Shown: positions 5,666-56,800 of the stretch, one piece after another
How the letters are laid out: every line of letters starts with the position of its first letter
How positions within the stretch are numbered: position 1 is the first letter of the stretch
Assembly (NCBI GenBank): GCA_964035545.1
Contig: OZ037770.1
Span: forward strand, 1,426,001-1,490,000
Direction: 5' to 3'
DNA: 64,000 bases
Origin: Bugula neritina
Taxonomy: Eukaryota; Animalia; Bryozoa
The notes under the pieces: generated by a model
What the model was told of the DNA's origin: nothing
Databases searched by the model: none
The model's input: the letters and a program-made list of their open reading frames with translations, nothing else
Position numbers and translations under genes: made by a program

Positions 5666-8600
5666 TGAGCATGTTAATGTATACAATTGTACCAAAGTAT
5701 GAGAACTAACATACATTCTCATTAGTATGATAGTTTCTGAGAATGTATAGTTGAATTATGTGAATGATGAAACATAGAGAATTAAAGTTTTATGGAGCAA
5801 ACGTGGTAGCTGGATGTAGATCAGTTTTTTGCATGCTTTAACTTAGTTAATCAAGTTGTCTATCTAAGTGCATAGTCTATAAGATGTTGCAGCGTTTTAA
5901 ATTAAGAAGTTTCTAGCAAAGCATATTATAACATTATAGGTAGTTTTAATGCTCTGGTTAAAATAGTAGTCTGACAACATTTCATGCAGTGGCACTACTT
6001 TTAAAAACGCGATTAGATTATAAAGACAGCTTTGATGTGAGTTTCTAACAGTTATATAACAAACTAAAGCTTTACTTTATTACTTAGCAAATTGTAGCAA
6101 AACTATACTTTTAGAAATCTGGGAAATTTTCAGTATATATTTTCCTAGAATGTTGTTTAGAGACATAAAAAAACTGCCTATGCACAACATACTTTGCATC
6201 TGTTTAGTATCTCGTAATTAGACATAAAAAAATCAAAGCCAATTATAAGGCAAAAGACCATAATACTGTACTATCATTGGATAGTTCTTCATCAATAAAC
6301 AGGTAGTCACCAGTGGTGGATATGAACCCCTCCTAGATGTTTCTCGTACTTCTTCCTCAAAAAGCATTTTCATTAAGCCAAAAAGAAATAACAATACACC
6401 TTTTTAGTTGACACTTTTTAATTTCTGACTGATATTTCACCTTATTTCCAATTATAATTAACTTTTAACTGGCACTTTTCTTTGTAGTAATTCCTACCCT
6501 TTAGACTGTGTACTTTGAAATGAGTCTGTTTTACTCGTTACATAAAGTATAGTTGCACTGGCTACAGGTTGACACAAAAGCAAGCCTATCTTGATAAAAT
6601 CATGCGCAAATGTAGAAACTACCGAGGAGTTTGTTCCTCATAATTAGAAATTGACAAATTATTTTTAATCCGTTTAAAAGCATCTGGTTAGGGAAGCATA
6701 TGCCGTGTTCATTTTGTTATTCTAGCATTAACAATAACAGAATGCAATAATTATAAGTTTATGAAAGTAATTTGTTTTCTTTCTAATTACAAATATAATA
6801 TTTTAGTATATATTGTAAATTTATAAGGCTTGCATTAGGAATAACGCAGCTAAAACATCATTTTCCTTAAAGTCTTAAAAATATATAAGTATAACATAAT
6901 ACACTATGCCAATAAACTTATTAAAGTACCAAGCAAGCTTAGCTAGTTTAAGAAAAATTACGCTAGGTAAATTCCCATTATTTATAGAATGCTTGCTGAT
7001 ATTAGCTTTTGATGTAATTAAAGTAAATTATTATTTATCTTTCTAGCTAAGGATTTCTTGCCGTAAGTTTTGCTTTTATGCATGGAGAAATGTCGTAACA
7101 AACGAGTTAAATTTTTATAGCACATAAAAATGTAATCTATAAGTCGAAGATATTTAAACTTAGCCATTAACTCATTTTAATTAGCAATGTAGCCTAAATC
7201 TAATACAATACAAAATATATACCAGTATATAAAATATATTTTTACCATATGCTGTTAATTACAGTATTTGTAAAACAAATTTTATGCTCATTAATTAAAT
7301 GCAACAAATATTTATAAAATACTAATAATGTTGAATAAATAAATTCAATATTTCCTTTTCTATTTAAATGGCTGCATAATTTCTTGCAAGGTTGTATAAA
7401 GGAGTTGTGGCCTACAACTTATTATGTGTTTAATTGCCACATATGTCTTAGGAAGAAGAAAACTTCCCAAAAATTCTTAGTTTGAAAATTCTAGTATAAT
7501 TAAAATCACTTAATATATGTCTTTGAAATGCATTTTGCCACTCTGCAAAATTGCAGGAACAAATATTGCATGAAGTAATAAATGATTTATGAAGTAATTA
7601 ACAAACCAATGTAAAAACTGTTGTTGTATATAGAACACAACATATTGATTTTCTTCAATTTCCACATCAAATCTATATATTCAATTATATCTAACCAATG
7701 CTAATAAACTAAACATGCATGCATACAAATATTTGCATCATATGCAAGTAATATTAGCTAATTAGCAACTATAGCATTTTTTTCATTATCTTTATTGCTT
7801 GCATATGTCTAAGTATTATTAAAATAAGGTTTTTATTTGCAACTTTGCACCACAAATTACATAAAATCTAAAAACTTGAGTTGTGACATGCATAGGGCTA
7901 CCTATACACAAATAGACCTTCATAAAACTCTCAATGATTTTATTCAACTCATGTATGCAAAAGTTTTGCATTAAAACAATTCTTCTAAATCACCCTAGAG
8001 CAGAAAATTATTACAAAAACAGCTTCTCATATATAATCTTTCTCCAGATTAATTTTTTTTCCTGTATTTAAACTAACTTAGCAAGTGAAGATTGTGATAT
8101 CACTCAGGTAATCACATATATATTATTCATAGCTGTAATACTTTAGCAATGAATAGATCATGTTTAATTTCCACTCTACCTAGCAGTTATTCAGAATTAT
8201 AGAGCTATGTATATCGTGAAATTGGAATAGCCTAATAGTTTTACATGTGTTTATAGCTAGACAAATTAACTTAAAAAGCTTACAATAATTAGATGATGTT
8301 TGCATTCTTTTGAAGGTTATGGTGAAGCTACTGCAAAACTGGCTATTAGTTTAGCATAATATGCAATGCCACGCAAAAGCATGCCAAACAAGCAATGTTT
8401 ATTTACCTTACCAGTGCAATTTTATCACCTTAAACACAAAAGCAAGTATAAAATACACATCCATATTAGATTAACTGTCAAGTTAAAAAAAGACGACATA
8501 TATTCATGAGCTGGTTCTGTTTGCACAAGTACAATTTAGACCAGCTTATTATTTAGATTGCCGCAAAAATATGACGTAAAATATGTCTTTAATCATTATT

Positions 8601-10602
8601 TTGATATTCACTGGTTGAAGATATTTTTTATATCCTAATATGTAAATATTGTACATAAATCTTAAAAATTAACTAGGTGAATAAGGAAAACTGCTAATTT
8701 TATGAAACTGTTATGTTAATAAAGACAATGGCTATCAACAAATCCCACCAGACCACAAACTAATTGTAAATACTAAAGCAATTATATAGTGCTATGTGTT
8801 GATCTAGCCTAGTCAATACACCACAAATATGTATTATGACATACCACATTTTAAGTACTGGGTTACCATTTATTCTAATGGGTATTTGTTTAAACTGTTA
8901 TATACAGCTTTTTGCACTACCAATATACAAGCCAGTTGTTATTCTGTCACTTTTTATCTACATCTCTTTTTAATGCCAGTTACTTGTTAGCTTCAGTACA
9001 AACAGCTAAACATTCTACTCTACAGCCAATCTTACTGTTAACTCTTGTTTAACAATATTACAAGAATCTAAAAATTTGAGTGTGTTTTAAGTATAATATT
9101 CTATCATTATAACTTTTAAATGAAACAATAATATGATAAATGCATTATAACTTTCTGAAAAGTTTGTTTGCAAAGTATATGTTTTTGGAAAATAGTTTTA
9201 CAACATTTGCTAGGAGCATTATATTTATTCCTATCTAAAATAATTTTGTTTGAACTGCTATGTTTGTAATCATGTAATCAGAAGTAAAGCATCAGTAAAA
9301 TGAGTATAAGTAGAAGCTTGACAGCTACATTAGGCATTGCTACATAGTACATAAATATATGGCCGTATTAAAAATACTTAGCTGCATTCACAGATAAATG
9401 CATGGCTTGGAATTACAATACCATGAATACATTATTTATTTAGCTGGGTAACTATACAATTATGCCAAAGTGAAAAGCTTTTGGTTATTAATGCCTGAAA
9501 TGTCTAACAATCTACTTAGGAGACCACCTTGTTGTTACAGAGTGAATGAGTTATTTGTTTGGCATTTGGATGATGGCACAAAGAAAGGCTATTTGGTTTG
9601 TTACTTGAGACTAGTAGCAAACTGCTACAGTCATAGCATCTTAGAAGATTTTGCATCACTTGCTAGAATTGTACATTATTTTAATGTAGCTATTGAAATT
9701 AATATCGCACTGAAAACACAGTATTGCAAAATCTTAAGCTGTACATAATTATATTATGCATCAAAAAGTACTTCTGCTATTCGACTATCCCAGGTTTATT
9801 TTAAACTAGCACTGCCAAAGTGCCTTGACTCTATTACAGTGTTTACTAGCTAATTTTGTTCTTCTCAATAGTGAAATAGATCTATTGCAAGAAATTAATG
9901 ACTAGATATAACAATAATGATTTTTAGGCAAGACTTTCGCATCTATATTGCTCATCTGCTAGCTTGAAATACCCCTCTCCTTGGACTAATCTCAGGCTTT
10001 TCATTGTTGTTTAAACAGTTTTTAAACTCCTATTTCAATAAATCATTACCAACACTGCCTGCATGTATTAATATTCATTAGTGCCATCAATGCACTGTGG
10101 AGACAGCACCTGATGTTCTGTATATTACATTATAGTACAGAGATACTAAATCCAAAACATCTAAAATAATTGATGCTTCTACCAGATTTTTAGCACACCT
10201 ATAATATGTATTCCTGTAGTAAATATTAATAAGATGTTTTAACTGATAGTTTTTATGCCATTATAATAGTTTGATACTATAACTACAACTTGAAACTCTT
10301 TAACCAGCACATTGGTTAGTAATATTGCTTCTTGATATTTAATTGCTGGTTCACAAACTATCAATAATAGGGATGCATATCAAAACTTGACTGCATTCAT
10401 AATATGATTTTAATGCTAGGTAATGACTAAGCATGTCTGGCTGATATGAGGTGACTATTTTGTACACTGTTTAACAACATCAGCTTTTTGGGTTCATTTA
10501 AAGCATCTGCAAATCTGTATTATACATAATTACTGTTAGGGCCAATTAATTAAATTGTTAACCCTGAAATGCTTTTTACACTGTAATACTAAGTAGTAAA
10601 AG

Positions 10603-10643
<41 letters not shown>

Positions 10644-11207
10644 TTGTAATTTATACATAACATTGTGCATTTAAAAAAAATCACAAAATACATAATTCAT
10701 TAGCTAAATTTCAAGGCGTTTTGTAGGTAGTGGGTTAATGTCAATAAAGTAGAATCCGGGAAGTTGAGTAGCTTTATTCAAGAGGAAGGCTCTCCAACAG
10801 TTCTACCAAAGCCTAAATAACATGTATAAAATAAAGGTTATATGCACAATTTTTTTTCCAAAACAGCCTGCAACTGTTTTGCTATTGCATATGCCCTATG
10901 CCATTCATCAAGTAGAACAATTTTTACCAGGATATTTAGAAAAGTTGACACAAGGGCTTTATAAACTATGTAACAGTAAAACTGTGAGTAGAAATTAATT
11001 GACACTAATGAATAATGCTTTAGGTGCTGGCAACAACCATAAAAGAAAAGTTATATAACAAACAAGTAGAAAAAGCACTAAACAAATCAACAGCATTATA
11101 TACAATTGGGGCACATACATGAAAACAGCAGCTAGTGTCATTTTCTTAAGAGAGCACTATTTTAGGTATAAATTTAAGAAGTATTAGAAAATGCAGAAAT
11201 TTACTGC

Positions 11208-11612
11208 AATTGGTTCATTTTATTTAAGTTAGTACATACTGAAGATCTCAAGTTTTTGCTAATGAACATGAGTTTTGGCCCGAAACTAAAAAATATCAAT
11301 AAATACACCTAAATAATTAAGGCTCTTTTTAATTTTCTTTGATTTCCTATGCTTTTTTCTAATTACAGCAACTTCTGACTGGGGATCGCCACGGTTAGTT
11401 TGTAACAGTAGGCAATCCAAATGAAATGAATAAATAGGAAAAAACATGAGAAATCATGCAAAATTAAGAAGAACCTTGATTATTTAGGTGTATTTCTTGA
11501 TGTCTCACTAATTTTAAGCAAAAAGCATTGTTCATTAGCAGCTAAAATGTAAAAATGGCTAAAAACTGCAGATTTCCAGTGTGTACTAAATTAAATAAAA
11601 GGACTCAATCAC
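11208..11612. mobile_element. Foldback/MITE-like element with long imperfect inverted arms (inside copy A)
   Basis: 11208-11360 is the diverged reverse complement of 11437-11612 (e.g. aaatacacctaaataat / attatttaggtgtattt; gctaatgaaca / tgttcattagc). Confidence 0.7.
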
Positions 11613-13659
11613 CTTTGCAACATAATTCAATAATTGCATGGTCAAGCAGAATAAACTACAATTAACAGCAACAACAGTGTAATAGTTGCGTAGAAAAGTT
11701 GTACTGCAAAAAACTAAAAGAATGCAAAATCTATAAATGTGTGCTACCAAGTAAATGCTGAACAGACATCATGAAATAGTGTACGAAATACAAACTATTA
11801 AACTTACCTGTTGATCTAATGCAGCCAAAACCTTAAGCTTAGAGTAGTGGAATGGTGCTGTTCGATGTTGATATGCTACAAGTAGCTAAGATGACTCAAA
11901 TTCTTGCCTTTAGGAGTAAGAGGCCTCAGCTCAGTTTCAACAAAACTTCCAATAATCTCAACGGATGCGCTCAATTAGGAGCCACAACAAAGCACACCCA
12001 TGTCATTTTAGTAAACTCTAAAAAATGAACGGAAATAAAACTGTTAGAGAGTAAACAGAGAAACATATAGTGATGGGGGAAAAACCTGTCAGCAAAGGTT
12101 ATATACACTCATAGCCATAACACGAAGAAAAAGATAATGAATAACAACCTATTCAAGATGACACAAGAAACCAAACAAATTTCTTTGACTAAAAAATATA
12201 ATTAAATACTATATTACTTGGCAAAAAATATTTGTTTTGAACAACGTATTATTGGGAAGAATTGCCAGTGTCTTAAATTTTGAGATTAAAGTTTCTGCCT
12301 TATAGCGGAAATAGAGAGGCAATCAATAGTGTACAAAACATGTTTTCAGTCATTGGCTGTTGACTAAATTGACAAAGTTAAAGAAAGCTTCCATATCATT
12401 ATTTATTTTGTTCTCAAGTGTGTGGTTACAGTTTCATGAGTCAGAAATATAATTATTTGAGATATGAAATCAAATGTAGTCAAAAGAGTGTCATACAATT
12501 TAAAATGTAGTAATAGAGCTTTGACAATAATTTCTTCTGCTAAGTAAAACAGGTACCATTATGTGCTACTTATCTTTTAGAGATGAACATCAAGGATGTT
12601 GAAAACAAAATAGTTGTAAATTACAGCAAATACCTTTCTACTTACCTAACCAGAGAAAATAAGTTTTCAACCTTGCATGCACTCAGCTGGTTTTCAATGT
12701 TTGGATCAGTGACATCTTTATAACTGATAGCAGCATTATGTGATAGCTTTAGGAATTGTTACCTTAAATCTAAATTATATAGAACTAGAAGTGCAAAAAT
12801 ATGGCATTAGTACTCATTGCACAATACACACTTGCTAGAGTAGCTAATCTAGCATCACATCAATTTAAGAAAGACAAAATTTTATTACTGTTCACAAATG
12901 ATGAATATTAAAAGTTGAATAATTAGACAAATTAACAATGATATTGATGTTACTTCAAACATTACTAATGGTAAACACCAAAATACTAATAGGAATAGTC
13001 ATGTTAACATCAATTAGAAAAGTAAAGATAATTTGAAAATGAGACAGTTTATAGGTCTAACTCTTATAGTTGACAAGCAATTACAGGGCAGTCATATTGA
13101 TGTAGGCTACCCTCAAAATGTAGCACTTTAAAAATATTAAAAAGACAGCACATATAAGAACATAATCTTAAAAATAGGCATATGTGACACCTATATTTTG
13201 ATTAACAAAGAAATCTTCTTTACTTTATTAATCTAGCTCATATAATGGTATTCTGTCTTAGTATGTTATTTTAATACTTGAAATCTAATCAGCTACAGAA
13301 AAGTACTTCAATTCAAAGGCCTTCATAATTATTCTTTAGTTTGCTATTTAAATAGACAGTAAGGTTGATGAATAAAATAAAAGTTAGTAAAGTAAAAACT
13401 AAATAAATTGAGAATAATATCTCCACTCTAAGGTTATAATCCTTATAAATTAACATTTTAATACTCCTGTTATCCTTAGGTATAGTTGTTAGCAATTTAA
13501 CTATGAGCTCAAAGCCAAATGTCAGTATCAGCATCCCCATTACATTGACTAAGACTGACTTTATAACCCTCAAGCTGTGGCACTCAATTTCTATAAGTAG
13601 TAACTAATAACAAATATAAAATTATTTATTTGCTACTGATAGTGATAATAATTAAAAAT

Positions 13660-16625
13660 AATAATATGATCCATTAAAATAGAACTAATAAAGCCAACGA
13701 CGTTAATGGTATGTCTAACTAAACATGGCATGTCTCGTCTGGCAGTGGGTATGTGGAGGGCCAGGCAACCTACGGCCGTCAACCCGTTAATGGCACAACT
13801 AGAAGAAGATACTCAAGAGAAGACAACAAAGTTGTCATGAAATGCTGCTTCAAAAGTACACCCAAATTGAGAGGTTATAGAAAAACAATGTATGAGCTCT
13901 GTAGACCCGGATCAAAGAATTATTTAAAAAGAATGTGCAAACGCTGGAAAACAGAGGAGAGTTTAACATCAGCGAATAGAGACTAGCGGATTAAGCAAGA
14001 ACTATGAAGAAACACAAGCATTTTAATGGAAGAAGAACTCCATAAGATTAAAGAAGGAACCTTGCAAGAACTAGGCACATCAATTGGTGAAGAAGATAAT
14101 GAAGAGCTAAATTTGCAAATAGAGGATGTTATAGTACAACATGAGATAGCATATAAATCAGCCATGAGAATTTTAAGAGTACCTAGTTCAGAGGTAGAAA
14201 AAGTGTTAGTAGAAAAATTATAAATAAGCATAACAAACTATCTAATGATCGACCAACACTAAGAGCCCTTAGGCACATTGAGAGGGTCAAATTACTACAG
14301 GCAGTAAAACAGATTAATGATGTGCTAAACTGTGTTGAGATTATTAATACCATTGAGCTTAATAACACCACCATGGCTTGTGCGAAAAATAGTAACAGAA
14401 CAAGTGTGTAACAAAAAGGAAAAAGAAAAACTGACAATGTACAAGTATGGAAAATACGACTGCAGAAGAAATAAAAAGAAATTAGATCAGACTTAAGTAA
14501 AATAGCAGAATGAAAAAGTAGAGCTTACAATGATTCATTGAGAAGAATGGTTGAAGAAAAATATAGGATAAAGAACAAAGAGTGTGGTGTAGTGATTGAA
14601 AAACTGAAGCAAACCTGAGAGCTGTAAGCCAGAAGATAAACAGATATACAGAATGAGTTGATCAATATAATCAGAACACAATGTTTACAATGTCAAGCGC
14701 TTTTATCAAGAATTATGAGGAAATGAATGTACATCTAAAGAGGCACCTGACAAGGAAATCAAAAGCATTCTGATAAAATATATGGGGTCAGCCAACTAAA
14801 AATAATACCAATGCAGAATGACTAAATAAAGTTAGCAACAAATTGGAGCATATGTAAAGACAAGGAAATTAGATCTTAAAAACGATGCAAACAACTGGAA
14901 TAGCAATTAATGTCATAAGGTTGATAAGAAAAAGCATGAAACCTGGAAAACACAACTGAAATACCTGGAAGAAAAGATAGGAGAAATAAAGATCAAACTA
15001 AGAATTTTCCAAGGAGACTCTTTATCTCTATCCCTTTTCTCCAACTACCGATTCGCATGACAGAAGCGGCTCAATGATGCAAATTTCGACGAGACAGAAA
15101 ACAAACCATCTCCTATATGTGGATGACCTGAAGGTAAATAGGAAATCAAAGTCAGAACTGGAAGCTTTGGTAAACACTGCCGGGATCTTCACAAGGAATA
15201 TAGAAATGAAATTTGGATTAAAAAATGTGCCACACTGGTTATGAGAAAGGGAAAGAAAATCAAGGACACAGGAATCAGTTTGCCTGATGAACAGGTAATC
15301 AAAGATCTGGGTGAGAAGCCGTATAAATATCTAGGAGTTCTTGAGATTGATAGAATACAAATATATGAAATGAAAAATAAGATCAGGGAGTACTACAAAC
15401 AAATAAGAAAAGTTCTAGATTCAAAACTGAATGGTGAGAACACAATCAAAGCAATAAACACATGGGCAGTAACAGCAGTGCATTACACAGCTAGAATACT
15501 TGACTGAACTGTTTCATGAGCTAAAAAATATGGACTGAAAGACAAGGAAGCTAATGACAACAAACCGTGCACCCTATCCGAGAGCAGATGTAGGCAGGCT
15601 GTATTTTAGCAGAAGGGAAGGCGGTAGAAGAATGTTGTCAACTGAAAAATGCATAAAGATTGAAAACTGCAGCATGTCAGACTACATAAATATAACATAG
15701 ACTGATAGAAACACCACACTGAATACCTTCCTAAAAGACAGAACAGCGGTAGAACTAAATAATGATAAAGTGATAGAAAGAACTGATGAGTGTAAAGAAA
15801 AGCTTCACGTGGTCAATACATCAAAATGGTGGAAGACATGAAAGCTTTTTTTTCTGGAACTGGTTGAAGTATGGTTGGCTGAAAAAGGAAACAGAAGGAC
15901 TGCTGACAGCTGCGCAAAATCAACTATTCACTACTAGAAATTATAAAGTGGCTATGATGAGAGAACAGGGTAGCAAGAAGTGTGGAATGTGTAACGCAAG
16001 AGACAAAACTTCGATGCACGTATTGAGTGAGTTTGAGAAGGTAGCAGAAGGAGAATATAAGAAAAAACACAACCTTTTGGCATTGATAATTTCAATAGTA
16101 GTTGTGTGAACTTCGTGGGTTTCAGAAAAGTAAGAATTGGTACGGCCATCAAGCAGAATAAGTACTGGAAAATGATAATGTGAAAACCTTGTAAGATTTT
16201 AACATACACACTGACGTAGTCATCAAAGTTAGGAGACCCGATATATTAGTAGTTGACAAGCATAATGCTGAAACAACGATAATTGATATCACAGTCCCTG
16301 TTAACTACAGAGTAAAAGAAAAAAATTCAAAAAGTTAGGAAAATATCAGAATTTAGCACTAGAATAAACCCGCCTTTGGAAAACATCAAAAAAGTCATCC
16401 CGTTGTAACTGGAGCCTTTGGAGCTTTATACAAGATTGTAGACTGGCTGACACTACTTGGAGTAGCTGAAAACAAATGCTCATTAATTCAGCAGACACCC
16501 TTACTAGGATCAGGATAAGCTCACATCCTGAGGAAAGTTCTATCCATTTCAGACTAGTATAACTAGGCCAATGGTAAAAGGTTACACCAGCTAAAAAACT
16601 ACGGTCAATCAACAATAATAATAAT
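13660..16625 (+). mobile_element. Decayed R4/Dong-clade non-LTR retrotransposon (RT + CCHC + restriction-like endonuclease)
   Basis: Frameshifted fragments in order: N-terminal RRRYSREDNKVVMKC...GYRKTMY; RT motifs IFQGDSLS (~15004) and HLLYVDDLK (~15107); FGLKKCA, YKYLGVLE, LNGENTIKAINTWAV, LKKETEGLLTAAQ; CxxC...H knuckle; RRPDILVVD...IIDITVP endonuclease; (AAT)n 3' tail. Many stops. Confidence 0.9.
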
Positions 16626-16629
16626 ATAC

Positions 16630-19600
16630 AACTATATTAGTGCAGTTGGTTCTATTATTAGATTAGCATATCGATTATGACTTTTCGATTGCCACCCTGA
16701 TACTATGAGTAAAATGTACAAGCATACGTGAAAGTATAGATATGATCATAAGTATAAAAATAGGTATAAGTATAAATATAAATATAGGTACAAGTATAAA
16801 ACGAATGATTATATTATTAATAATATTAGTCAGTGATACCTATAACCGTAATGGTTTTTAGACTTACAGTTATCATTAACATTAGCTGAGTAATATGATT
16901 AGTTAAAATAATGGTATTCATTATTATATCATAGTTATAAGTTATAACTCTAGTCTCTAAAGAGTAACAGCAAGTGTAATTGGGATATTCATATTAAATT
17001 TCATATTCACATAGTGAAATGTTTATGTTATGAACTAATTTATTCCTTCAACATTTAACTATAAATATGATTAACACTAACTTTGACCAGCAGTATTACT
17101 AAAAGAAGCGTATTACAAATATAAGATAATAAAATTCTAGTAGTAGGACTAATAGTATTACTAGGTCCAGTATTATTCTTGTTATCTTATTCATCATTCA
17201 TGAGTTATCAAATTTGAAATTACTACTTATTAGCATCAGCATATAAAAAGTAAGATCATTAGGAATAATTATCATGAGGTATGATCTATGATTTGCATTA
17301 TCCATATATAGTTTAATATCAATATGATATATTATTATTGCTGATAGTCTATGTTATAGTTAAATTTATACTTATCTTTACAGTTACCTATAGTAGCACT
17401 TATTAGTTATTTGTGGTAGCCAAACTAATGTTTAATATTAATGAATTAAACTGAGTATCATAAAAGTGTTACTAAGAATTTTAATTATAATCGTAATGGT
17501 GATCATATTACTTTATTATAATTATTATATTTTATCATTAATGCTAAACTGAGTTAATGTATATACTTTGAGTTTTACTATTACTCATTATATTTACACT
17601 TATAGTAAAACTAAATATGTAAAAGTTATACTTATACTATTATTATTCGTATTTCATTAGACTTACATCTAAGATCGCAGTCCTATTACTACTACCACTG
17701 ATACTAGTACTGCAACTAGTACTAGTACTGCTACTAGTACTAGTACTACTACTACTACTACTAATAGTACTGTTACTACTACTACTACTAGTACTACTAC
17801 TAGGTCTACTACTGTACCAGTACAACTACAAACTTTGAAAATAACTGCAAGAAAGGTATGACTTACTCTTTTTCTTAGTCTTACTGTGACTCTCAGTCGT
17901 AATGTAAAATAAAATTGTGAACTGTAAAGTTAAACCCAAGGCTGAAATTTATTTAATTAAATTTAGACAATCTGAATCATTGGCTCAATCCTTGAGTTTG
18001 ACTATTACTATTATTATTAGTGTTACGATTGTGATTATCATTGGCATTATGCCATTATGATTATCATTATGATTGTAATTGTGGTAATTCTAACATTAAT
18101 TATAATCATAAATTAAAAGGTAATGATTAATGATAATTATTTTCATTTTGTAATCATAATGATGTAAATTTTGATGTAAAACCAAAATACTAAAACTAAA
18201 AGTAAAAGTTATAAAATTAAATGATAAAATATTATAATGATAATTATTATATTTATTATATTATTATTGAATATATTATTTCATTAGAAAATAGGTTGCA
18301 GCTTAGCATGATTAAAATTCAGTAAAAATTAGTTTACCAACAGCAAACATGCATGCGTCTTGTCAACATTCAATTCGTAGTGTCATAGCGAAGCCAGATT
18401 ACTTGTAGTACGACTACTAGAACTACTACTACTAGTGATGGATTACAGATACTTGGCGATTTTAGCTGTGAGTGACCTTCACCTCACATTCTCGTCATGC
18501 GCGCGGCATTAGACTAAGTAGAGGGTATAAAGCACTGAGCCGGAAAAGAAACAATATATTTTAATTATAGGTAATACTAATAGTAATAGTAATATAATTT
18601 ATGGTAATATATAAGTAATATTATTGAGTTCATTGGTATGGAGTATAGACCTATCACTGATAGTATCAGTATCAACTACCACTTACATACTACTTCAACT
18701 TATAACTTACCTTCAACTCAAACTCAAACTGATACTTCTTGGAATCATTTGTCTTTGATCATATTGGCATTGTCATTGTGATTGTAATAACTATTAATAT
18801 TTTTAGTTCAACATCAATGCCGAACATATTGTAATAACTAATAAGATAATCATACGGTTGATATATTTTGCTAATACTAATACTAATACTAATAGTTATA
18901 GTAATAGTTATAGTAATTCAGTGTCACTCTCACTCTGGTGGAGTGAGACTCAGACTTAGAGTTAGAGACAGAGTGAGTCCGAGTAAGTCTGAGTGTTGGT
19001 AATAGTAATAGTCATATAAATTTAAATTATATTTACTTATTTCTAGCAATCACAATGGCAATAGTTATAGTAACTTTCACTTACTCTTAAATCATTGAAC
19101 CTGAACTAAAAGTAAAATTAAGCATTATGATTATGATTATCATTATGATTATACCTATGATTTTATTATGTTTAAATTAAAAATCAATATCATGATAATA
19201 TCATAGTGATAGACATATTATTGATAAATGATAATATAAAAGTAATTTGATAAATTATACATTGATTTTGAATTAAGGTGATACTCATACTGATACTAGA
19301 CCGGTACTGAAAGTGATAGTAATACTAATAGTAATAGTAATAGTCATATAAATTTAAGTTATATTTACTCATTACCGGCAATCACAATGGCAATAGTAAC
19401 TTAAACTGTAACAGTAATGGTATGGGTATGTTTGAAATTGTCACTATCAGTATTGCTATGAATCAAAATATAATGCTATCATACCAATAATTTAAAATAA
19501 TATTACAAAGCTTCAGTAGCAACTTTTACTTGTACCAGTTTGGAATTTTGAATTATACATATTCTTAGTTAAAGTCTTCAAGTTTATTGTCAAAATGAAC

Positions 19601-21500
19601 TTGAAATTAAAGACTTAGTAGTAAAAATTAAACTAAGACTGACTGTAAGTGACTAAGATTAAAAATAAGTAATTTTAAATATCGATTTAGTATTTTTCTT
19701 ACTCTTTGTCTTAAAATTGACTTTTATTTTGCACCTACTCCTGGTCAATGATTCTTTTTTCTATTTATATTACTATTGCTATTAGTATAATTGACTTAAA
19801 TTTAATAATAGATATGATTATATCTTTATAAATGTGATATTTGATTTTATGAATAGTAATTCGAAAACTCTTTGGTATTATTTATTTTTGATCATTGTAG
19901 TTATTATCATTATATTTGTATAATAATTATGATTATCAAATTCAATATCGATATTTGTATTATGGTATGGATATCTGCCTCCGTCCCATGTTCTGTTTTG
20001 CAGTGCCTTTTTACATTCACGTCTAGGTTCACATTGCGATGGTCATACTGATAGCACTTGGGGACAGTGATGAGCATAATGATTATCACTAATATTAAGA
20101 TTATCGTTATTAGGATTTAGAATAATTTAATAAACAAGCAACTTAAAACAAATGTTTTTACTAATATACATATTAATTACTAATATAAATATACTACTAT
20201 GGATATTATAATTATTATACTTTACAATTCAATGTAAGATAATCATAATACGAACTGGTAAAACTAAATATAAAGTAAATGTAATAATACTAATAGTAGT
20301 TATCCATTCCCCTTTGGTTTCACATACTAATAATTGGAAACCTCTGTCCTAATATTATTTCTATTAATATTGCTCAAAGTTTGATCCCTATTTAATTTTA
20401 TAGTTCACTCACCAGCTACATAACTTTATTAAAATACATGTGGTATTGGTTATAGTACTAGTGAAACTTGAAGTTGAATAGCATGCTTATTACTCACTGC
20501 TCTTTGCTTACATTATTAGGGTTACTCTTTAGTCTTAGAGATACCCTAACATAAACTTGAAAGCTGGAGGTAGTACTAGTCTAGTGCTGTGTTAATCCTA
20601 CACTGTTGACTTATCAACACTGTGACTATAATTATGACTCCTAAGTCAAAGTCATTTTCATATAGTAGTAATCACTATGACAGACTGAAAGTCAGGAAGA
20701 CTAAATATAATGGTAAAGTGTGTAAGAATAAATCATACTTAATCAATTACTTTTAGTTTTGTTACCAGTGTTGGGTCAACTTTCAGAATAAAGAATAAAT
20801 ATAATTATAAAGATAAATGGATAAAAATTCCAATCATGGTTTAATGTGCCTATTTTAAGCTGGTAATTTAATTACTATAATATAAGTGCTCAAAATACAA
20901 CTTTTGATTTTCATAATTATGTTTTAATTTAATACAGATACCATAGTATCATATACAGTAGAATCAGTTGTATCTTATTTAATAATGAAGTAACTTATTG
21001 GAGCTTTCACAGTTATTAATTATTTACTTGTTAGTCTTTGAACTGGGACAATGTTTGAAACTTGAAGTAGAATGAAGTTTGATTACAGTTACCGCAATGG
21101 TATCTGCAGTCACAATAGGAATACGCATATAACTATGTTTATATTTGTGAAAAATATATAGTCAAAACTAGATAAGGTAATAGTAATTATAATTGGTTTC
21201 ACTTTTAATATATTCCTATAAACTGGAAAATAGACAGAAGCATTTAATCATGAAAGTAAACCTAGTGGAAGTAAATCAATTCACTAAGTATAGTAAAATA
21301 TTTACTATTCAGTAAGTTTGTTTACTTTAGTTAATTGTACTCGATTATTTCTGTCGGTTTTTCAGTTGATTTTTCTACCTTTTGCTATAGCATATCAAAC
21401 TACCACAAAGTCATGCTTCCGTATTACAATTATAAACATAGTGTTACTGTGTAATGTTATAGTAATGTAATAGTAATATTTGGATCATTGTAAGTATTTC
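16630..21500. repeat. Cryptic period-3/6 low-complexity tract, including (ACT)n at 17685-17812
   Basis: Successive runs of diverged hexamers (agtata, gattat/cattat, aatagt, actaaa, gagtga/gactca, actcaa). A similar texture occurs at ~12850-13650. Mirrored at ~40420-45270. Confidence 0.7.
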
Positions 21501-44800: not shown

Positions 44801-47800
44801 TACGCTTCTTTTAGTAATACTGCTGGTCAAAGTTAGTGTTAATCATATTTATAGTTAAATGTTGAAGGAATAAATTAGTTCATAACATAAACATTTCACT
44901 ATGTGAATATGAAATTTAATATGAATATCCCAATTACACTTGCTGTTGCTCTTTAGAGACTAGAGTTATAACTTATAACTATGATATAATAATGAATACC
45001 ATTATTTTAACTAATCATATTACTCAGCTAATGTTAATGATAACTGTAAGTCTAAAAGCCATTACGGTTATAGGTATCACTGACTAATATTATTAATAAT
45101 ATAATCATTCGTTTTATACTTGTACCTATATTTATATTTATACTTATACCTATTTTTATACTTATGATCATATCTATACTTTCACGTATGCTTGTACATT
45201 TTACTCATAGTATCAGGGTGGCAATCGAAAAGTCATAATCGATATGCTAATCTAATAATAGAACCAACTGCACTATTATTATTATTATTGTTGATTGACC
45301 GTAGTTTTTTAGCTGGTGTAACCTTTTACTATTGGCCTAGTTATACTAGGCTGAAATGGCTAGAACTTTCCTCAGGATGTGAGCTTATCCTGATCCTAGT
45401 AAGGGTGTCTGCTGAATTAATGAGCATTTGTTTTCAGCTACTCCAAGTAGTGTCAGCCAGTCTACAATCTTGTATAAAGCTCCAAAGGCTCCAGTTACAA
45501 CGGGATGACTTTTTTGATGTTTTCCAAAGGCGGGTTTATTCCAGTGCTAAATTCTGATATTTTCCTAACTTTTCGAATTTTTTTCTTTTACTCTGTAGTT
45601 AACAGGGACTGTGATATCAATTATCGTTGTTTCAGCATTATGCTTGTCAACTACTAATATATCGGGTCTCCTAACTTTGATGACTACGTCAGTGTGTATG
45701 TTAAAATCTTACAAGGTTTTCACATTATCGTTTTCCAGTACTTATTCTGCTTGATGGCCGTACCAATTCTTACTTTTCTGAAACCCACGAAGTTCACACA
45801 ACTACTATTGAAATTATCAATGCCAAAAGGTTGTGTTTTTTCTTATATTCTCCTTCTGCTACCTTCTCAAACTCACTCAATACGTGCATCGAAGTTTTGT
45901 CTCTTGCGTTACACATTCCACACTTCTTGCTACCCTGTTCTCTCATCATAGCCACTTTATAATTTCTAGTAGTGAATAGTTGATTTTGCGCAGCTGTCAG
46001 CAGTCCTTCTGTTTCCTTTTTCAGCCAACCATACTTCAACCAGTTCCAGGAAAATGCTTCCATGTCTTCCACCATTTTGATGTATTGACCACGTGAAGCT
46101 TTTCTTTACACTCATCAGTTCTTTCTATCACTTTATCATTATTTAGTTCTACCGCTGTTCTGTCTTTTAGGAAGGTATTCAGTGTGGTGTTTCTATCAGT
46201 CTATGTTATATTTATGTAGTCTGACATGCTGCAGTTTTCAATCTTTATGCATTTTTCAGTTGACAACATTCTTCTACCGCCTTCCCTTCTGCTAAAATAC
46301 AGCCTGCCTACATCTGCTCTCGGATAGGGTGCACGGTTTGTTGTCATTAGCTTCCTTGTCTTTCAGTCTATATTTTTTAGCTCATGAAACAGTTCAGTCA
46401 AGTATTCTATCTGTGTAATGCACTGCTGTTACTGCCCATGTGTTTATTGCTTTGATTGTGTTCTCACCATTCAGTTTTGAATCTAGAACTTTTCTTATTT
46501 GTTTGTAGTACTCCTTGATCTTATTTTTCATTTCATATATTTGTATTCCATCAATCTCAAGAACTCCTAGATATTTATACGGCTTCTCACCCAGATCTTT
46601 GATTACCTGTTCATCAGGCAAACCGATTCCTGTGTCCTTAATTTTCTTTCCCTTTCTCATAACCAGTGTGGCACATTTTTTAATCCAAATTTCATTTCTA
46701 TATTCCTTGTGAAGATCCCGGCAGTGTTTACCAAAGCTTCCAGTTCCCACTTTGATTTCCTATTTACCTTCAGGTCATCCACATATAGGAGATGGTTTGT
46801 TTTCTGTCTCGTCGAAATTTGCATCATTGAGCCGCTTCTGTCATGCGAATCGGTAGTTGGAGAAAAGGGATAGAGATAAAGAGTCTCCTTGGAAAATTCT
46901 TAGTTTGATCTTTATTTCTCCTATCTTTTCTTCCAGGTATTTCAGTTGTGTTTTCCAGGTTTCATGCTTTTTCTTATCAACCTTATGACATTAATTGCTA
47001 TTCCAGTTGTTTGCATCGTTTCTAAGATTTAATTTCCTTGTCTTTACATATGCTCCAATTTGTTGCTAACTTTATTTAGTCATTCTGCATTGGTATTATT
47101 TTTAGTTGGCTGACCCCATATATTTTATCAGAATGCTTTTGATTTCCTTGTCAGGTGCCTCTTTAGATGTACGTATTCATTTCCTCGTAATTCTTGATAA
47201 AAACGCTTATCATTGTAAACATTGTGTTCTGATTATATTGATCAACTCATTCTGTATATCTGTTTATCTTCTGGCTTACAGCTCTCAGGTTTTGCTTCAG
47301 TTTTTCAATCACTACACCACACTCTTTGTTCTTTATCCTATATTTTTCTTCAACCATTCTTCTCAATGAATCATTGTAAGCTCTATACTTTTTCACTCTG
47401 CTTTTTTACTTAAGTCTGATCTAATTTCTTTTTATTTCTTCTGCAGTCGTATTTTCCATACTTGTACATTGTCAGTTTTTCTTTTTCCTTTTTGTTACAC
47501 ACTTGTTCTGTTACTATTTTTCGCACAAGCCATGGTGGTGTTATTAAGCTCAATGGTATTAATAATCTCAACACAGTTTAGCACATCATTAATCTGTTTT
47601 ACTGCCTGTAGTAATTTGACCCTCTCAATGTGCCTAAGGGCTCTTAGTGTTGGTCGATCATTAGATAGTTTGTTATGCTCATTTATAATTTTTCTACTAA
47701 CACTTTTTCTACCTCTGAACTAGGTACTCTTAAAATTCTCATGGCTGATTTATATGCTATCTCATGTTGTACTATAACATCCTCTATTTGCAAATTTAGC

Positions 47801-50800
47801 TCTTCATTATCTTCTTCACCAATTGATGTGCCTAGTTCTTGCAAGGTTCCTTCTTCAATCTTATGGAGTTCTTCTTCCATAAAATGCTTGTGTTTCTTCA
47901 TAGTTCTTGCTTAATCCGCTAGTCTCTATTCGCTGATGTTAAACTCTCCTCTGTTTTCCAGCGTTTGCACATTCTTTTTAAATAATTCTTTGATCCGGGT
48001 CTACAGAGCTCATACATTGTTTTTCTATAACCTCTCAATTTGGGTGTACTTTTGAAGCAGCATTTCATGACAACTTTGTTGTCTTCTCTTGAGTATCTTC
48101 TTCTAGTTGTGCCATTAACGGGTTGACGGCCGTAGGTTGCCTGGCCCTCCACATACCCACTGCCAGACGAGACATGCCATGTTTAGTTAGACATACCATT
48201 AACGTCGTTGGCTTTATTAGTTCTATTTTAATGGATCATATTATTATTTTTAATTATTATCACTATCAGTAGCAAATAAATAATTTTATATTTGTTATTA
48301 GTTACTACTTATAGAAATTGAGTGCCACAGCTTGAGGGTTATAAAGTCAGTCTTAGTCAATGTAATGGGGATGCTGATACTGACATTTGGCTTTGAGCTC
48401 ATAGTTAAATTGCTAACAACTATACCTAAGGATAACAGGAGTATTAAAATGTTAATTAATAAGGATTATAACCTTAGAGTGGAGATATTATTCTCATTTT
48501 ATTTAGTTTTTACTTTACTAACTTTTATTTTGTTCATCAACCTTACTGTCTATTTAAATAGCAAACTAAAGAATAATTATGAAGGCCTTTGAATTGAAGT
48601 ACTTTTCTGTAGCTGATTAGATTTCAAGTATTAAAATAACATACTAAGACAGAATACCATTATATGAGCTAGATTAATAAAGTAAAGAAGATTTCTTTGT
48701 TAATCAAAATATAGGTGTCACATATGCCTATTTTTAAGATTATGTTCTTATATGTGCTGTCTTTTTAATATTTTTAAAGTGCTACATTTTGAGGGTAGCC
48801 TACATCAATATGACTGCCCTGTAATTGCTTGTCAACTATAAGAGTTAGACCTATAAACTGTCTCATTTTCAAATTATCTTTACTTTTCTAATTGATGTTA
48901 ACATGACTATTCCTATTAGTATTTTGGTGTTTACCATTAGTAATGTTTGAAGTAACATCAATATCATTGTTAATTTGTCTAATTATTCAACTTTTAATAT
49001 TCATCATTTGTGAACAGTAATAAAATGTTGTCTTTCTTAAATTAATGTGATGCTAGATTAGCTACTCTAGCAAGTGTGTATTGTGCAATGAGTACTAATG
49101 CCATATTTTTGCACTTCTTGTTCTATATAATTTAGATTTAAGGTAACAATTCCTAAAGCTATCACATAATGCTGCTATCAGTTATAAAGATGTCACTGAT
49201 CCAAACATTGAAAACTAGCTGAGTGCATGCAAGGTTGAAAACTTATTTTCTCTGGTTAGGTAAGTAGAAAGGTATTTGCTGTAATTTACAACTATTTTGT
49301 TTTCAACATCCTTGATGTTCATCTCTAAAAGATAAGTAGCACATAATGGTACCTGTTTTACTTAGCAGAAGAAATTATTGTCAAAGCTCTATTACTACAT
49401 TTTAAATTGTATGACACTCTTTTGACTACATTTGATTTCATATCTCAAATAATTATATTTCTGACTCATGAAACTGTAACCACACACTTGAGAACAAAAT
49501 AAATAATGATATGGAAGCTTTCTTTAACTTTGTCAATTTAGTCAACAGCCAATGACTGAAAACATGTTTTGTACACTATTGATTGCCTCTCTATTTCCGC
49601 TATAAGGCAGAAACTTTAATCTCAAAATTTAAGACACTGGCAATTCTTCCCAATAATACGTTGTTCAAAACAAATATTTTTTGCCAAGTAATATAGTATT
49701 TAATTATATTTTTTAGTCAAAGAAATTTGTTTGGTTTCTTGTGTCATCTTGAATAGGTTGTTATTCATTATCTTTTTCTTCGTGTTATGGCTATGAGTGT
49801 ATATAACCTTTGCTGACAGGTTTTTCCCCCATCACTATATGTTTCTCTGTTTACTCTCTAACAGTTTTATTTCCGTTCATTTTTTAGAGTTTACTAAAAT
49901 GACATGGGTGTGATTAGTTGTGGCTCCTAATTGAGCGCATCCGTTGAGATTATTGGAAGTTTTGTTGAAACTGAGCTGAGGCCTCTTACTCCTAATGGCA
50001 AGAATTTGAGTCATCTTAGCTACTTGTAGCATATCAACATCGAACAGCACCATTCCACTACTCTAAGCTTAAGGTTTTGGCTGCATTAGATCAACAGGTA
50101 AGTTTAATAGTTTGTATTTCGTACACTATTTCATGATGTCTGTTCAGCATTTACTTGGTAGCACACATTTATAGATTTTGCATTCTTTTACTTTTTTGCA
50201 GTACAACTTCTCTACGCAACTATTACACTGTTGTTGCTGTTAATTGTAGTTTATTCTGCTTGACCATGCAATTATTGAATTATGTTGCAAAGGTGATTGA
50301 GTCCTTTTATTTAATTTAGTACACACTGGAAATCTGCAGTTTTTAGCCATTTTTACATTTTAGCTGCTAATGAACAATGCTTTTTGCTTAAAATTAGTGA
50401 GACATCAAGAAATACACCTAAATAATCAAGGTTCTTCTTAATTTTGCATGATTTCTCATGTTTTTTCCTATTTATTCATTTCATTTGGATTGCCTACTGT
50501 TACAAACTAACCGTGGCGATCCCCAGTCAGAAGTTGCTGTAATTAGAAAAAAGCATAGGAAATCAAAGAAAATTAAAAAGAGCCTTGATTATTTAGGTGT
50601 ATTTATTGATATTTTTTTAGTTTCGGGCCAAAACTCATGTTCATTAGCAAAAACTTGAGATCTTCAGTATGTACTAACTTAAATAAAATGAACCAATTGC
50701 AGTAAATTTCTGCATTTTCTAATACTTCTTAAATTTATACCTAAAATAGTGCTGTCTTAAGAAAATGACACTAGCTGCTGTTTTCATGTATGTGCCCCAA

Positions 50801-53800
50801 TTGTATATAATGCTGTTGATTTGTTTAGTGCTTTTTCTATTTGTTTGTTATATAACTTTTCTTTTATGGTTGTTGCCAGCACCTAAAGCATTATTCATTA
50901 GTGTCAATTAATTTCTACTCACAGTTTTACTGTTACATAGTTTATAAAGCCCTTGTGTCAACTTTTCTAAATATCCTGGTTAAAATTGTTCTACTTGATG
51001 AATGGCATATGCAATAGCAAAACAGTTGCAGGCTGTTTTGGAAAAAAAATTGTGCATATAACCTTTATTTTATACATGTTATTTAGGCTTTGGTAGAACT
51101 GTTGGAGAGCCTTCCTCTTGAATAAAGCTACTCAACTTCCCGGATTCTACTTTATTGACATTAACCCACTACCTACAAAACGCCTTGAAATTTAGCTAAT
51201 AAATTATGTATTTTGTGATTTTTTTTAAATGTACAATGTTATGTATAAATTACAATCAGTTTATATATATATATATACATATCTTTTACTACTTAGTATT
51301 ACAGTGTAAAAAGCATTTCAGGGTTAACAATTTAATTAATTGGCCCTAACAGTAATTATGTATAATACAGATTTGCAGATGCTTTAAATGAACCCAAAAA
51401 GCTGATGTTGTTAAACAGTGTACAAAATAGTCACCTCATATCAGCCAGACATGCTTAGTCATTACCTAGCATTAAAATCATATTATGAATGCAGTCAAGT
51501 TTTGATATGCATCCCTATTATTGATAGTTTGTGAACCAGCAATTAAATATCAAGAAGCAATATTACTAACCAATGTGCTGGTTAAAGAGTTTCAAGTTGT
51601 AGTTATAGTATCAAACTATTATAATGGCATAAAAACTCTCAGTTAAAACATCTTATTAATATTTACTACAGGAATACATATTATAGGTGTGCTAAAAATC
51701 TGGTAGAAGCATCAATTATTTTAGATGTTTTGGATTTAGTATCTCTGTACTATAATGTAATATACAGAACATCAGGTGCTGTCTCCACAGTGCATTGATG
51801 GCACTAATGAATATTAATACATGCAGGCAGTGTTGGTAATGATTTATTGAAAAGCCTGAGATTAGTCCAAGGAGAGGGGTATTTCAAGCTAGCAGATGAG
51901 CAATATAGATGCGAAAGTCTTGCCTAAAAATCATTATTGTTATATCTAGTCATTAATTTCTTGCAATAGATCTATTTCACTATTGAGAAGAACAAAATTA
52001 GCTAGTAAACACTGTAATAGAGTCAAGGCACTTTGGCAGTGCTAGTTTAAAATAAACCTGGGATAGTCGAATAGCAGAAGTACTTTTTGATGCATAATAT
52101 AATTATGTACAGCTTAAGATTTTGCAATACTGTGTTTTCAGTGCGATATTAATTTCAATAGCTACATTAAAATAATGTACAATTCTAGCAAGTGATGCAA
52201 AATCTTCTAAGATGCTATGACTGTAGCAGTTTGCTACTAGTCTCAAGTAACAAACCAAATAGCCTTTCTTTGTGCCATCATCCAAATGCCAAACAAATAA
52301 CTCATTCACTCTGTAACAACAAGGTGGTCTCCCAAGTAGATTGTTAGACATTTCAGGCATTAATAACCAAAAGCTTTTCACTTTGGCATAATTGTATAGT
52401 TACCCAGCTAAATAAATAATGTATTCATGGTATTGTAATTCCAAGCCATGCATTTATCTGTGAATGCAGCTAAGTATTTAATACGGCCATATATTTATGT
52501 ACTATGTAGCAATGCCTAATGTAGCTGTCAAGCTTCTACTTATACTCATTTTACTGATGCTTTACTTCTGATTACATGATTACAAACATAGCAGTTCAAA
52601 CAAAATTATTTTAGATAGGAATAAATATAATGCTCCTAGCAAATTTTGTAAAACTATTTTCCAAAAACATATACTTTGCAAACAAACTTTTCAGAAAGTT
52701 ATAATGCATTTATCATATTATTGTTTCATTTAAAAGTTATAATGATAGAATATTATACTTAAAACACACTCAAATTTTTAGATTCTTGTAATATTGTTAA
52801 ACAAGAGTTAACAGTAAGATTGGCTGTAGAGTAGAATGTTTAGCTGTTTGTACTGAAGCTAACAAGTAACTGGCATTAAAAAGAGATGTAGATAAAAAGT
52901 GACAGAATAACAATTGGCTTGTATATTGGTAGTGCAAAAAGCTGTATATAACAGTTTAAACAAATACCCATTAGAATAAATGGTAACCCAGTACTTAAAA
53001 TGTGGTATGTCATAATACATATTTGTGGTGTATTGACTAGGCTAGATCAACACGTAGCACTATATAATTGCTTTAGTATTTACAATTAGTTTGTGGTCTG
53101 GTGGGATTTGTTGATAGCCATTGTCTTTATTAACATAACAGTTTCATAAAATTAGCAGTTTTCCTTATTCACCTAGTTAATTTTTAAGATTTATGTACAA
53201 TATTTACATATTAGGATATAAAAAATATCTTCAACCAGTGAATATCAAAATAATGATTAAAGACATATTTTACGTCATATTTTTGCAGCAATCTAAATAA
53301 TAAGCTGGTCTAAATTGTACTTGTGCAAACAGAACCAGCTCATGAATATATGTTGTCTTTTTTTAACTTGACAGTTAATCTAATATGGATGTGTATTTTA
53401 TACTTGCTTTAATGTGTTTAAGGTGATAAAATTGCACTGGTAAGGTAAATAAACATTGCTTGTTTGGCATGCTTTTGCGTGGCATTGCATATTATGCTAA
53501 ACTAATGGCCAGTTTTGCAGTAGCTTCACCATAACCTTCAAAAGAATGCAAATATCATCTAATTATTGTAAGCTTTTTAAGTTAACTTGTCTAGCTATAA
53601 ACACATGTAAAACTATTAGGCTATTCCAATTTCACGATATACATAGCTCTATAATTCTGAAAAACTGCTAGGTAAAGTGGAAATTTAACATGATCTATTT
53701 ATTGCTAAAGTATTACAGCTATGAATAATATATATGTGATTACCTGAGTGATATCACAATCTTCACTTGCTAAGTTAGTTTAAATACAGGGAAAAAAATT

Positions 53801-56800
53801 AATCTGGGGAAAAATTATATATGAGAAGCTGTTTTTGTAATAATTCCCTGCTCTAGAGTGGTTTAGAAGAATTGTTTTAAAGCAAAACTTTTGCATACAT
53901 GAGTTGAATAAAATCATTGAGAGTTTTATGAAGGTCTATTTGTGTATAGGTAGCCCTATGTCACAACTCAAGTTTTTAGATTTTATGTAATTTGTGGTGC
54001 AAAGTTGCAAATAAAAACCTTATTTTAATAATACTTAGACATATGCAAGCAATAAAGATAATGAAAAAAATGCTATAGTTGCTAATTAGCTAATATTGCT
54101 TGCATATGATGCAAATATTTGTATGCATGCATGTTTAGTTTATTAGCATTGGTTAGATATAATTGAATATATAGATTTGATGTGGAAATTGAAGAAAATC
54201 AATATGTTGTGTTCTATATACAACAACAGTTTTTACATTGGTTTGTTAATTACTTCATAAATCATTTATTACTTCATGCAATATTTGTTCCTGCAATTTT
54301 GCAGAGTGGCAAAATGCATTTCAAAGACATATATTAAGTGATTTTAATTATACTAGAATTTTCAAACTAAGAATTTTTGGGAAGTTTTCTTCTTCCTAAG
54401 ACATATGTGGCAATTAAACACATAATAAGTTGTAGGCCACAACTCCTTTATACAACCTTGCAAGAAATTATGCAGCCATTTAAATAGAAAAGGAAATATT
54501 GAATTTATTTATTCAACATTATTAGTATTTTATAAATATTTGTTGCATTTAATTAATGAGCATAAAATTTGTTTTACAAATACTGTAATTAACAGCATAT
54601 GGTAAAAATATATTTTATATACTGGTATATATTTTGTATTGTATTAGATTTAGGCTACATTGCTAATTAAAATGAGTTAATGGCTAAGTTTAAATATCTT
54701 CGACTTATAGATTACATTTTTATGTGCTATAAAAATTTAACTCGTTTGTTACGACATTTCTCCATGCATAAAAGCAAAACTTACGGCAAGAAATCCTTAG
54801 CTAGAAAGATAAATAATAATTTACTTTAATTACATCAAAAGCTAATATCAGCAAGCATTCTATAAATAATGGGAATTTACCTAGCGTAATTTTTCTTAAA
54901 CTAGCTAAGCTTGCTTGGTACTTTAATAAGTTTATTGGCATAGTGTATTATGTTATACTTATATATTTTTAAGACTTTAAGGAAAATGATGTTTTAGCTG
55001 CGTTATTCCTAATGCAAGCCTTATAAATTTACAATATATACTAAAATATTATATTTGTAATTAGAAAGAAAACAAATTACTTTCATAAACTTATAATTAT
55101 TGCATTCTGTTATTGTTAATGCTAGAATAACAAAATGAACACGGCATATGCTTCCCTAACCAGATGCTTTTAAACGGATTAAAAATAATTTGTCAATTTC
55201 TAATTATGAGGAACAAACTCCTCGGTAGTTTCTACATTTGCGCATGATTTTATCAAGATAGGCTTGCTTTTGTGTCAACCTGTAGCCAGTGCAACTATAC
55301 TTTATGTAACGAGTAAAACAGACTCATTTCAAAGTACACAGTCTAAAGGGTAGGAATTACTACAAAGAAAAGTGCCGGTTAAAAGTTAATTATAATTGGA
55401 AATAAGGTGAAATATCAGTCAGAAATTAAAAAGTGTCAACTAAAAAGGTGTATTGTTATTTCTTTTTGGCTTAATGAAAATGTTTTTTGAGGAAGAAGTA
55501 CGAGAAACATCTAGGAGGGGTTCATATCCACCACTGGCGACTACCTGTTTATTGATGAAGAACTATCCAATGATAGTACAGTATTATGGTCTTTTGCCTT
55601 ATAATTGGCTTTGATTTTTTTATGTCTAATTACGAGATACTAAACAGATGCAAAGTATGTTGTGCATAGGCAGTTTTTTTATGTCTCTAAACAACATTCT
55701 AGGAAAATATATACTGGATTTTCGGGTGATATGGACCGCCACTTGGGGGGTGATATGGAGCGTGGACCATATCACTCAGCAAATTGAATTTTTCTATTCA
55801 TATACAATTTTTTGAAGAAAAATAATACTATTTCTCAAGTGTTTCAAAAAATTATGAAGCATTAAACTTCTAAATATTGATTAGACAACAGTATAGCCAG
55901 TTGCTGTAGAATGTGTGCTTAAAATATTTATACTCATGCAATGTATTTTAGATGCCAAGATATTCTTTCAAAAATATTTGAAATGCTTGGAGTTAGGAGG
56001 CACTAAAAGAAGCTGTTAAACACTTTTTTAAATCTATTGTTTTATGTTACTTTTTAATATAGCAAAATGCATTTCTAACACAAAAAAGCTGATTTTATGT
56101 GACGGAGTCTGTGGTGGCCGATATCACCCGAAATTCCAAAAAATCCCCGGGTGATATGGTCCACCAATTTTCAATTATAGCTCAGTCAAGCATCTGTATA
56201 AGAGCTTCAAATTCTGTTTGTATGTCAGTAGAGATAGCACCCACATAATTTTCAATCAACCATAGTCAGCCTGGGCTGTGGGCTTAAGTGGCCCATATCA
56301 CCCGCAGGTTTCCCTCACATTTAGCGCATGATGCCGATAATAATAAAATGAGATATGTGCGGCTGATGCATAAACTAATACAGATCTCTGGTGTCAGTAT
56401 GAATCTATTATGCAGGTGGATATTGTAACAAGACATGAGGAGACAATGCAGGATATCAGAAAGTTGTTATCTATTGAGTTTCCTACTCTGAGGATATCAA
56501 AGTCTGGTTTACAGGTCAAAGGTTGGTTTATCTCTTATAAAATTTGACTGAAAAAGAGCTGGACACTTTTCAGTCCTTAGAAAAATTCAAAAAGTTTTAT
56601 CTCAGTTATTATAGCTGCATATATGTTAGTTTAAGTTGTTGATTTTTCTTCACCTTCTTGCATCCTTCAATCCATATAATTTCTTAGCTCTCATTTTTAG
56701 GTTATGTCCTTTGATAACTAAACATAAATGAGACAATTTGAACTAAATCATCGTATAAAGTACTTTTTTATCTGATATATAAGAAAATATCAAAATAACT

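Follow-up and report, generated by a model that had tools for sequence, protein, structure and literature searches.

Based on a whole-genome search for terminal sequences and on the reading of individual junctions, two inverted copies of a large element, termed copies A and B, were assigned to a transposon family in the genome of Bugula neritina. The window analysed is the 64,000-nucleotide stretch G000:C6:1426001-1490000, and the host assembly comprises 216 Mb. With a probability of about 85% on sequence comparison, A and B are two of roughly 80 near-identical copies of a young non-autonomous DNA transposon family with terminal inverted repeats (TIRs), which has a modal length of 20.4 kb and occupies about 1.7 Mb. 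Within this family the A/B pair is ordinary. An initial annotation had described two sharp-ended copies of about 20 kb in opposite orientation and 9.3 kb apart, of which copy B carries CAG...CTG ends and an exact 8-bp direct repeat on both sides; all of these features were recovered when the junctions were read by eye and with BLAST alignment, and the spacer (26687-35962) measures 9,276 bp.

Family membership and element junctions

When each 300-bp end of the element was used as a query, as the initial annotation had suggested, at least 40 matches at 99-100% identity were obtained per end on contigs C1-C8. A whole-genome pattern search with the terminal 18-mers recovered 82 left and 82 right tips, compared with 0 and 1 for the reversed-pattern controls. 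These tips form 73 left/right pairs in the proper orientation, most commonly 20.3-20.5 kb long, of which 37 exceed 20.6 kb and the longest reaches 52 kb; the paired copies total 1.73 Mb, or 0.8% of the genome. The single two-copy duplication supposed earlier thus gives way to a dispersed family. Among 29 copies whose flanks were read, 22 carry a perfect 8-bp target-site duplication (TSD) and one a TSD with one mismatch, and the remaining six, including copy A, have none; the TSDs of the checked copies are all different. The 52-kb copy contains a nested full copy, yet has a perfect TSD (GCATAGAG). Copies are strongly concentrated in a few chromosomal regions: the median nearest-neighbour distance is 122 kb, whereas simulations gave 985 kb and, in 2000 runs, never less than 441 kb. 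Contig C6 (16 Mb) holds 21 of the 73 paired copies and a 1-Mb stretch of C3 another 11, so that neighbouring copies are the rule.

Copy B starts with CAGGGCATAATT and ends with TATATACTG, and copy A has the same tips. Read inward, both tips begin with CAG, followed by an imperfect inverted repeat of 16-40 nt. The 8-mer AGACATAA is located at exactly +31 from both tips, and the 10-mer AGTATCTCGT occurs at offsets L17, L145, and R76; such shared subterminal motifs are the layout expected for transposase binding sites, which are putative here. The predicted empty site of copy B, composed of 8 nt of the left flank, one 8-mer, and 8 nt of the right flank, occurs 29 times in the genome with 1-2 mismatches (control, 0) in paralogous repeats that are uninterrupted, so the target of copy B was one member of a small repeat family. 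At this target (window 35940-35962 and 55725-55790), at least 29 paralogues share GGTGACATGATTTTTGGGTGATAT.

Aligned globally, A and B differ by substitution at 121 of 19,729 bases (0.61%) and show 23 indel events, the largest of which is a 643-bp deletion found only in B (element positions 692-1334) and covering a segment that 19 other sampled copies keep. Two family copies on C7 (G000:C7:12251519-12271962 and C7:14860517-14880962) have the same right flank and right-side 8-mer (CATAATTT cattagaattgc) and different left flanks, suggestive of segmental duplication, or else of a rearrangement whose breakpoint falls within or at the element. A C7 copy duplicated along with its right flank (L023 and L025 identical) implies that some copies spread by segmental duplication; nothing specific to A and B points to such an origin. 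That the pair in the window is a plain inverted segmental duplication, or an assembly artefact joining two haplotypes, with no transposition at all, is highly improbable, because homology ends exactly at the family tips at all four junctions, the flanks are single-copy in the assembly, and the two copies differ by the substitutions and indels given above. For copy B, with its TSD and 29 paralogous empty sites, this explanation is effectively refuted. The claim of a giant non-autonomous element, as opposed to a generic segmental duplication, is thus borne out by 8-bp TSDs that are perfect and different among copies and by the empty sites of B.

Several observations weigh against the transposon reading given above. 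The TIR is weak (10/16 or 22/40 matches), and the right tip, CAGTA, does not match the hAT terminal motif YARNG, which the left tip, CAGGG, does. About 20% of the paired copies checked have no TSD. The nTnnnnAn preference is not seen in the TSDs, which have T at position 2 in 5/23 cases and A at position 7 in 12/23 and are simply rich in A and T. Matches to the hAT dimerisation domain (PF05699, 14 in the genome), the KDZ domain (PF18758, 10), and the P/THAP9-like RNase H domain (PF21787, 4) all fall outside the 73 copy intervals, and no transposase-encoding element with matching termini was found in the genome. In addition, inspection for coding inserts covered one copy longer than 20.6 kb.

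Relationship of copies A and B

The initial annotation had further proposed a single local inverted hop to a linked site, comparable to Ac/Ds transposition; A and B would then be parent and daughter. Such a hop is possible but doubtful. The two copies are close neighbours within a clustered family, copy B is an insertion product with a clean TSD and empty-site evidence, and five variants in the right 1.8 kb are common to A and B but absent from the 14 other copies among 16 sampled; there the two form a clade (support, 100/98), while the rest of the tree is star-like. At 0.61%, their divergence is also somewhat below the 0.8-0.9% measured against a third copy, and it is close to the approximately 0.8-0.9% of other family pairs. 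In contrast, across the left 1.1 kb the copy most similar to B is one from contig C1, and in a 6-kb interior segment A is barely top-ranked (10502 bits versus 10498 and 10473 for copies on other contigs). In a three-way comparison over 13.9 kb with the C6:1647899 copy (C), 78 differences separate A and B from C, while 42 are private to B and 39 to A; A is identical to B in tracts at 7-8 kb and 18-19 kb, and the relationship is star-like elsewhere, a patchy pattern such as gene conversion gives. These kinship comparisons covered 16-25 of the approximately 80 copies. Furthermore, the 643-bp deletion is private to B, and B therefore cannot be the donor of A. The patchy sisterhood and the modest difference in divergence do not establish a recent, clean hop from A to B. 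Gene conversion between inverted neighbours would fit the mosaic, as would an old sisterhood going back to the burst; A and B may have exchanged sequence in patches, or they may share a recent local parent.

In element orientation, copy A is flanked by AATTATGC and AAAATTTC, which do not form a TSD. Its proximal outer flank is single-copy, and its inner flank (window 26691-27186) has a single paralogue with 77% identity (G000:C6:1617297-1617852), in which homology begins 4 bp from the junction. No empty site for A was found, and the sequence upstream of this paralogue has no match in the window. The left-end junction of A is crossed by a palindrome (Table 1); the 64 kb contain only 7 non-AT hairpins, this one included, whose stem reaches 9 or more. 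Together with the start of paralogue homology at 4 bp, the palindrome hints at a break at the tip of A. The break may have occurred exactly at the transposon tip and been repaired by a short snap-back copy of the tip. Some later rearrangement at one of its ends may have cost A its duplication, and a TSD-less chimera like A would result from recombination between two direct copies. An inversion by recombination was considered for the missing TSD and rejected, as no reciprocal copy with the left flank AAAATTTC was found. Another family copy has its right end 3.9 kb away from the inner-flank paralogue. On the outer side, 450 bp from copy A, a satellite-like repeat (window 5331-5680) has approximately 70-75% identity to many tandem arrays, several of which are near contig ends.

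Interior content and host-gene context

The element contains 142 stop-to-stop open reading frames (ORFs) of at least 40 aa, none with a credible Pfam match, and copy B has a single ORF of at least 120 aa, in agreement with the earlier statement that a transposase ORF is lacking. No Rfam family and no tRNA were detected in the element, and no host gene was seen among its cargo. The unrelated cargo supposed earlier contains nothing recognisable as a gene or RNA; among its contents are a decayed reverse-transcriptase relic and further repeats. One minus-strand ORF (46397-46759) has 118 homologues, many with PF00078 (reverse transcriptase), which indicates that the interior holds a dead non-LTR retrotransposon; a weak zf-RVT hint is located at 45797-46105. 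A 6-kb internal query gave 1,128 first-look candidates, compared with about 90 for the element ends, pointing to further repeats inside the element. A palindromic region of about 400 bp (window 50296-50697) has approximately 66% identity to its own reverse complement in every copy.

An autonomous partner among the longer copies, of which one above 20.6 kb was read, was also considered and rejected. The extra length of the 25.1-kb copy (G000:C6:1647899-1673022) is due to nested inserts of 3.7 kb and 0.94 kb with no ORF longer than 89 aa, and two 32.4-kb copies carry inserts at different places and so form no subfamily. An ORF in the spacer of the window (31736-32089, minus strand), starting with MNHAETFSLQAGALTTTLQ..., is found again in another family copy, within a nested insert of 3.7 kb (L051:3520-7235), and marks a further repeat family, which has no Pfam match.

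Copy B most likely lies within an intron of a TRIM-NHL gene, the joining of whose exons is predicted, and it would have landed there in the small repeat. With the exons so joined, the inverted pair would bracket the 5' half of the gene. The clustered copies, some of them in genes, constitute a ready substrate for inversions and deletions.

Table 1. Positions in the window of the two element copies, their termini and motifs, and neighbouring features
Feature	Position	Strand	Description
Copy A, ~20.4-kb family	6131..26686	-	20,556 bp; without TSD; both 18-mer termini present
Segment deleted in B, present in A	25353..25995	-	Family standard, not an insertion in A
Hairpin-type palindrome, AATTATGCC-CT-GGCATAATT	26675..26694	.	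9+9 nt; spans left-end junction of A, 26686/26687
5' exons of host TRIM-type gene in spacer	29850..35248	+	RING 29850-30092, B-box-like 30088-30402, coiled coil 34904-35245
Left TSD of copy B, GATTTTCG	35955..35962	.	8 bp
Copy B, ~20.4-kb family	35963..55716	+	19,754 bp; 643-bp deletion after element position 691 (window ~36653/36654)
Left terminus of B	35963..36002	+	Imperfect TIR that agrees with the right tip at 22/40; its initial 12 nt, CAGGGCATAATT, kept in two old relics
Left subterminal motifs of B	35979 and 36107 (AGTATCTCGT); 35993 (AGACATAA)	+	
Decayed non-LTR retrotransposon (reverse transcriptase) relic inside element	45797..48182	-	ORF homologues and zf-RVT hint
AGTATCTCGT motif near right end of B	start 55632		On plus strand as ACGAGATACT
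Right terminus of B	55677..55716	-	Inward reading CAGTATATATTTTCC...; AGACATAA at 55679-55686, on plus strand as TTATGTCT
Right TSD of copy B, GATTTTCG	55717..55724	.	8 bp, exact match to left one
NHL-repeat exon 3' of copy B	57945..58688	+	NHL E 1.1e-5; likely 3' part of same TRIM-NHL gene
Family tip and motif set			CAGGGCATAATT, CAGTATATATTT tip, AGACATAA and AGTATCTCGT motifs

Candidate transposases and comparison with known systems

The initial annotation had labelled the element hAT-like and proposed a search for an autonomous partner of hAT or P type; no such partner with matching ends was found. P elements and THAP9-like elements possess a P-type transposase, an 8-bp TSD, and a TIR of ~31 bp, and the TSD length of the family fits this description, while the 4 PF21787 matches lie, as stated, outside the copies. 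Maverick/Polinton elements, characterized by a 6-bp TSD, long TIRs, and genes for a protein-primed polymerase and an integrase, do not match the family, which has an 8-bp TSD, a weak short TIR, and no domains in the 142 ORFs. hAT elements generate 8-bp TSDs and carry the terminal motif YARNG (PMC3014272), with TIRs of 5-27 bp (PMC12506042). At ten hAT loci nothing resembling the family tips was seen within 1.5 kb, and one resident hAT end was read as CAGGGTTGGGGTC. Another hAT element, with a 563-aa open frame and the 3' end ...CAACCCTG, is present three times (L041, L042, and L043, at G000:C1:30462367, C3:28905230, and C5:1593917); its copies are 100% identical across the 2,055 bp that were read, and it looks recently active.

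Sixteen extra genome matches of CAGGGCATAATT were considered as partner termini and attributed to chance, since homology stops after 12 nt. In two old relics (G000:C4:12453645, 86-89% identity; G000:C6:6338180, 81%), similarity to the family is confined to the left 700-870 bp, and neither has a transposase within 10 kb. Beside the C4 relic (G000:C4:12454476-12458619; L059:882-5025), three open frames encode a dUTPase (E 5e-32), a Monjiviricetes-type viral fusion glycoprotein (E 1.6e-7), and an rve integrase core (E 3.5e-7); the relic adjoins a separate virus-like or retro-like element. No LTR was seen within 10 kb, and diverged partial relatives are present on C1, C5, and C7.

Zisupton elements likewise make 8-bp TSDs (PMC12730594), and a resident KDZ/Zisupton element of ~17 kb (G000:C5:10983288-11000355; L062:9330 to L064:2886) has the 8-bp TSD AGACATAG and a CAG start. 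Near-identical copies of it are present at two sites on C4, 6.7 kb apart, and on C8, and open KDZ reading frames of 451 aa occur in four places. Because this element combines CAG with an 8-bp TSD, these features fail to separate hAT from KDZ/Zisupton here. What stands of the hAT-like label is the 8-bp TSD and the CAGGG left tip, with no hAT transposase linked to them; the label rests only on TSD length and the CAG start, and the choice of superfamily between hAT-like and KDZ-like is unproven. The resident KDZ/Zisupton transposase, as opposed to a hAT enzyme, is unlikely to be what moves the family, despite the shared TSD length and CAG start and the open 451-aa frames, because the resident KDZ element has a 27-bp TIR (23/27; CAGTTAGGTGCAGAAATGGAGAT..., beginning CAGTTAGGTGCAG) and inverted subterminal arrays of a 98-bp repeat, neither of which resembles the 20-kb family, and a BLAST comparison between the family and the 43.5 kb surrounding the KDZ gene returned microsatellite matches only.

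For the non-autonomous TIR family itself, a DDE transposase of hAT-like or KDZ/Zisupton-like type, supplied in trans and making 8-bp staggered cuts, may excise and reinsert the copies. It is a speculative proposal, with the odds well against it, that a gene-less 20-kb unit reached about 80 copies in a recent burst through a transposase not encoded near any matching ends; if true, an enzyme, either an unrecognised hAT/KDZ relative or a host-resident transposase, would be moving 20-50 kb of DNA efficiently. Cut-and-paste elements are usually less mobile when longer, and a non-autonomous family normally consists of short elements. An element of 20 kb that lacks genes and has about 80 young copies, amounting to 0.8% of a 216-Mb genome, is an outlier in this respect, and its transposase, once identified, could serve large-cargo vectors.

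Non-autonomous hAT elements (Ds-type and hAT-N families) share with the present family the 8-bp TSD, a short imperfect TIR with a CAG start, and a left CAGGG that fits YARNG (PMC3014272), as well as short subterminal repeats, clustered (linked) insertions, and dependence on a trans-acting transposase. In contrast to them, the family is, at 20.4 kb, roughly 10-50 times the usual size, yet has about 80 young copies, and it differs in its right tip CAGTA, the lack of an nTnnnnAn target, the lack of a hAT transposase with matching ends, and the lack of a recognisable transposase remnant inside. KDZ/Zisupton elements, including the resident ~17-kb element, resemble the family in the 8-bp TSD, the CAG start, and very large size, whereas the family has no KDZ domain or relic and differs from the resident element in TIR and subterminal architecture. 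In macrotransposons, as known from maize Ac/Ds, two transposon ends mobilise the DNA between them. Although neither a small progenitor with the family ends nor a source locus was found, two relics share just the left ~700-870 bp, and the interior holds a dead retrotransposon and other repeats; these features would fit an origin of the family by capture of about 19 kb of intergenic DNA between two ends.

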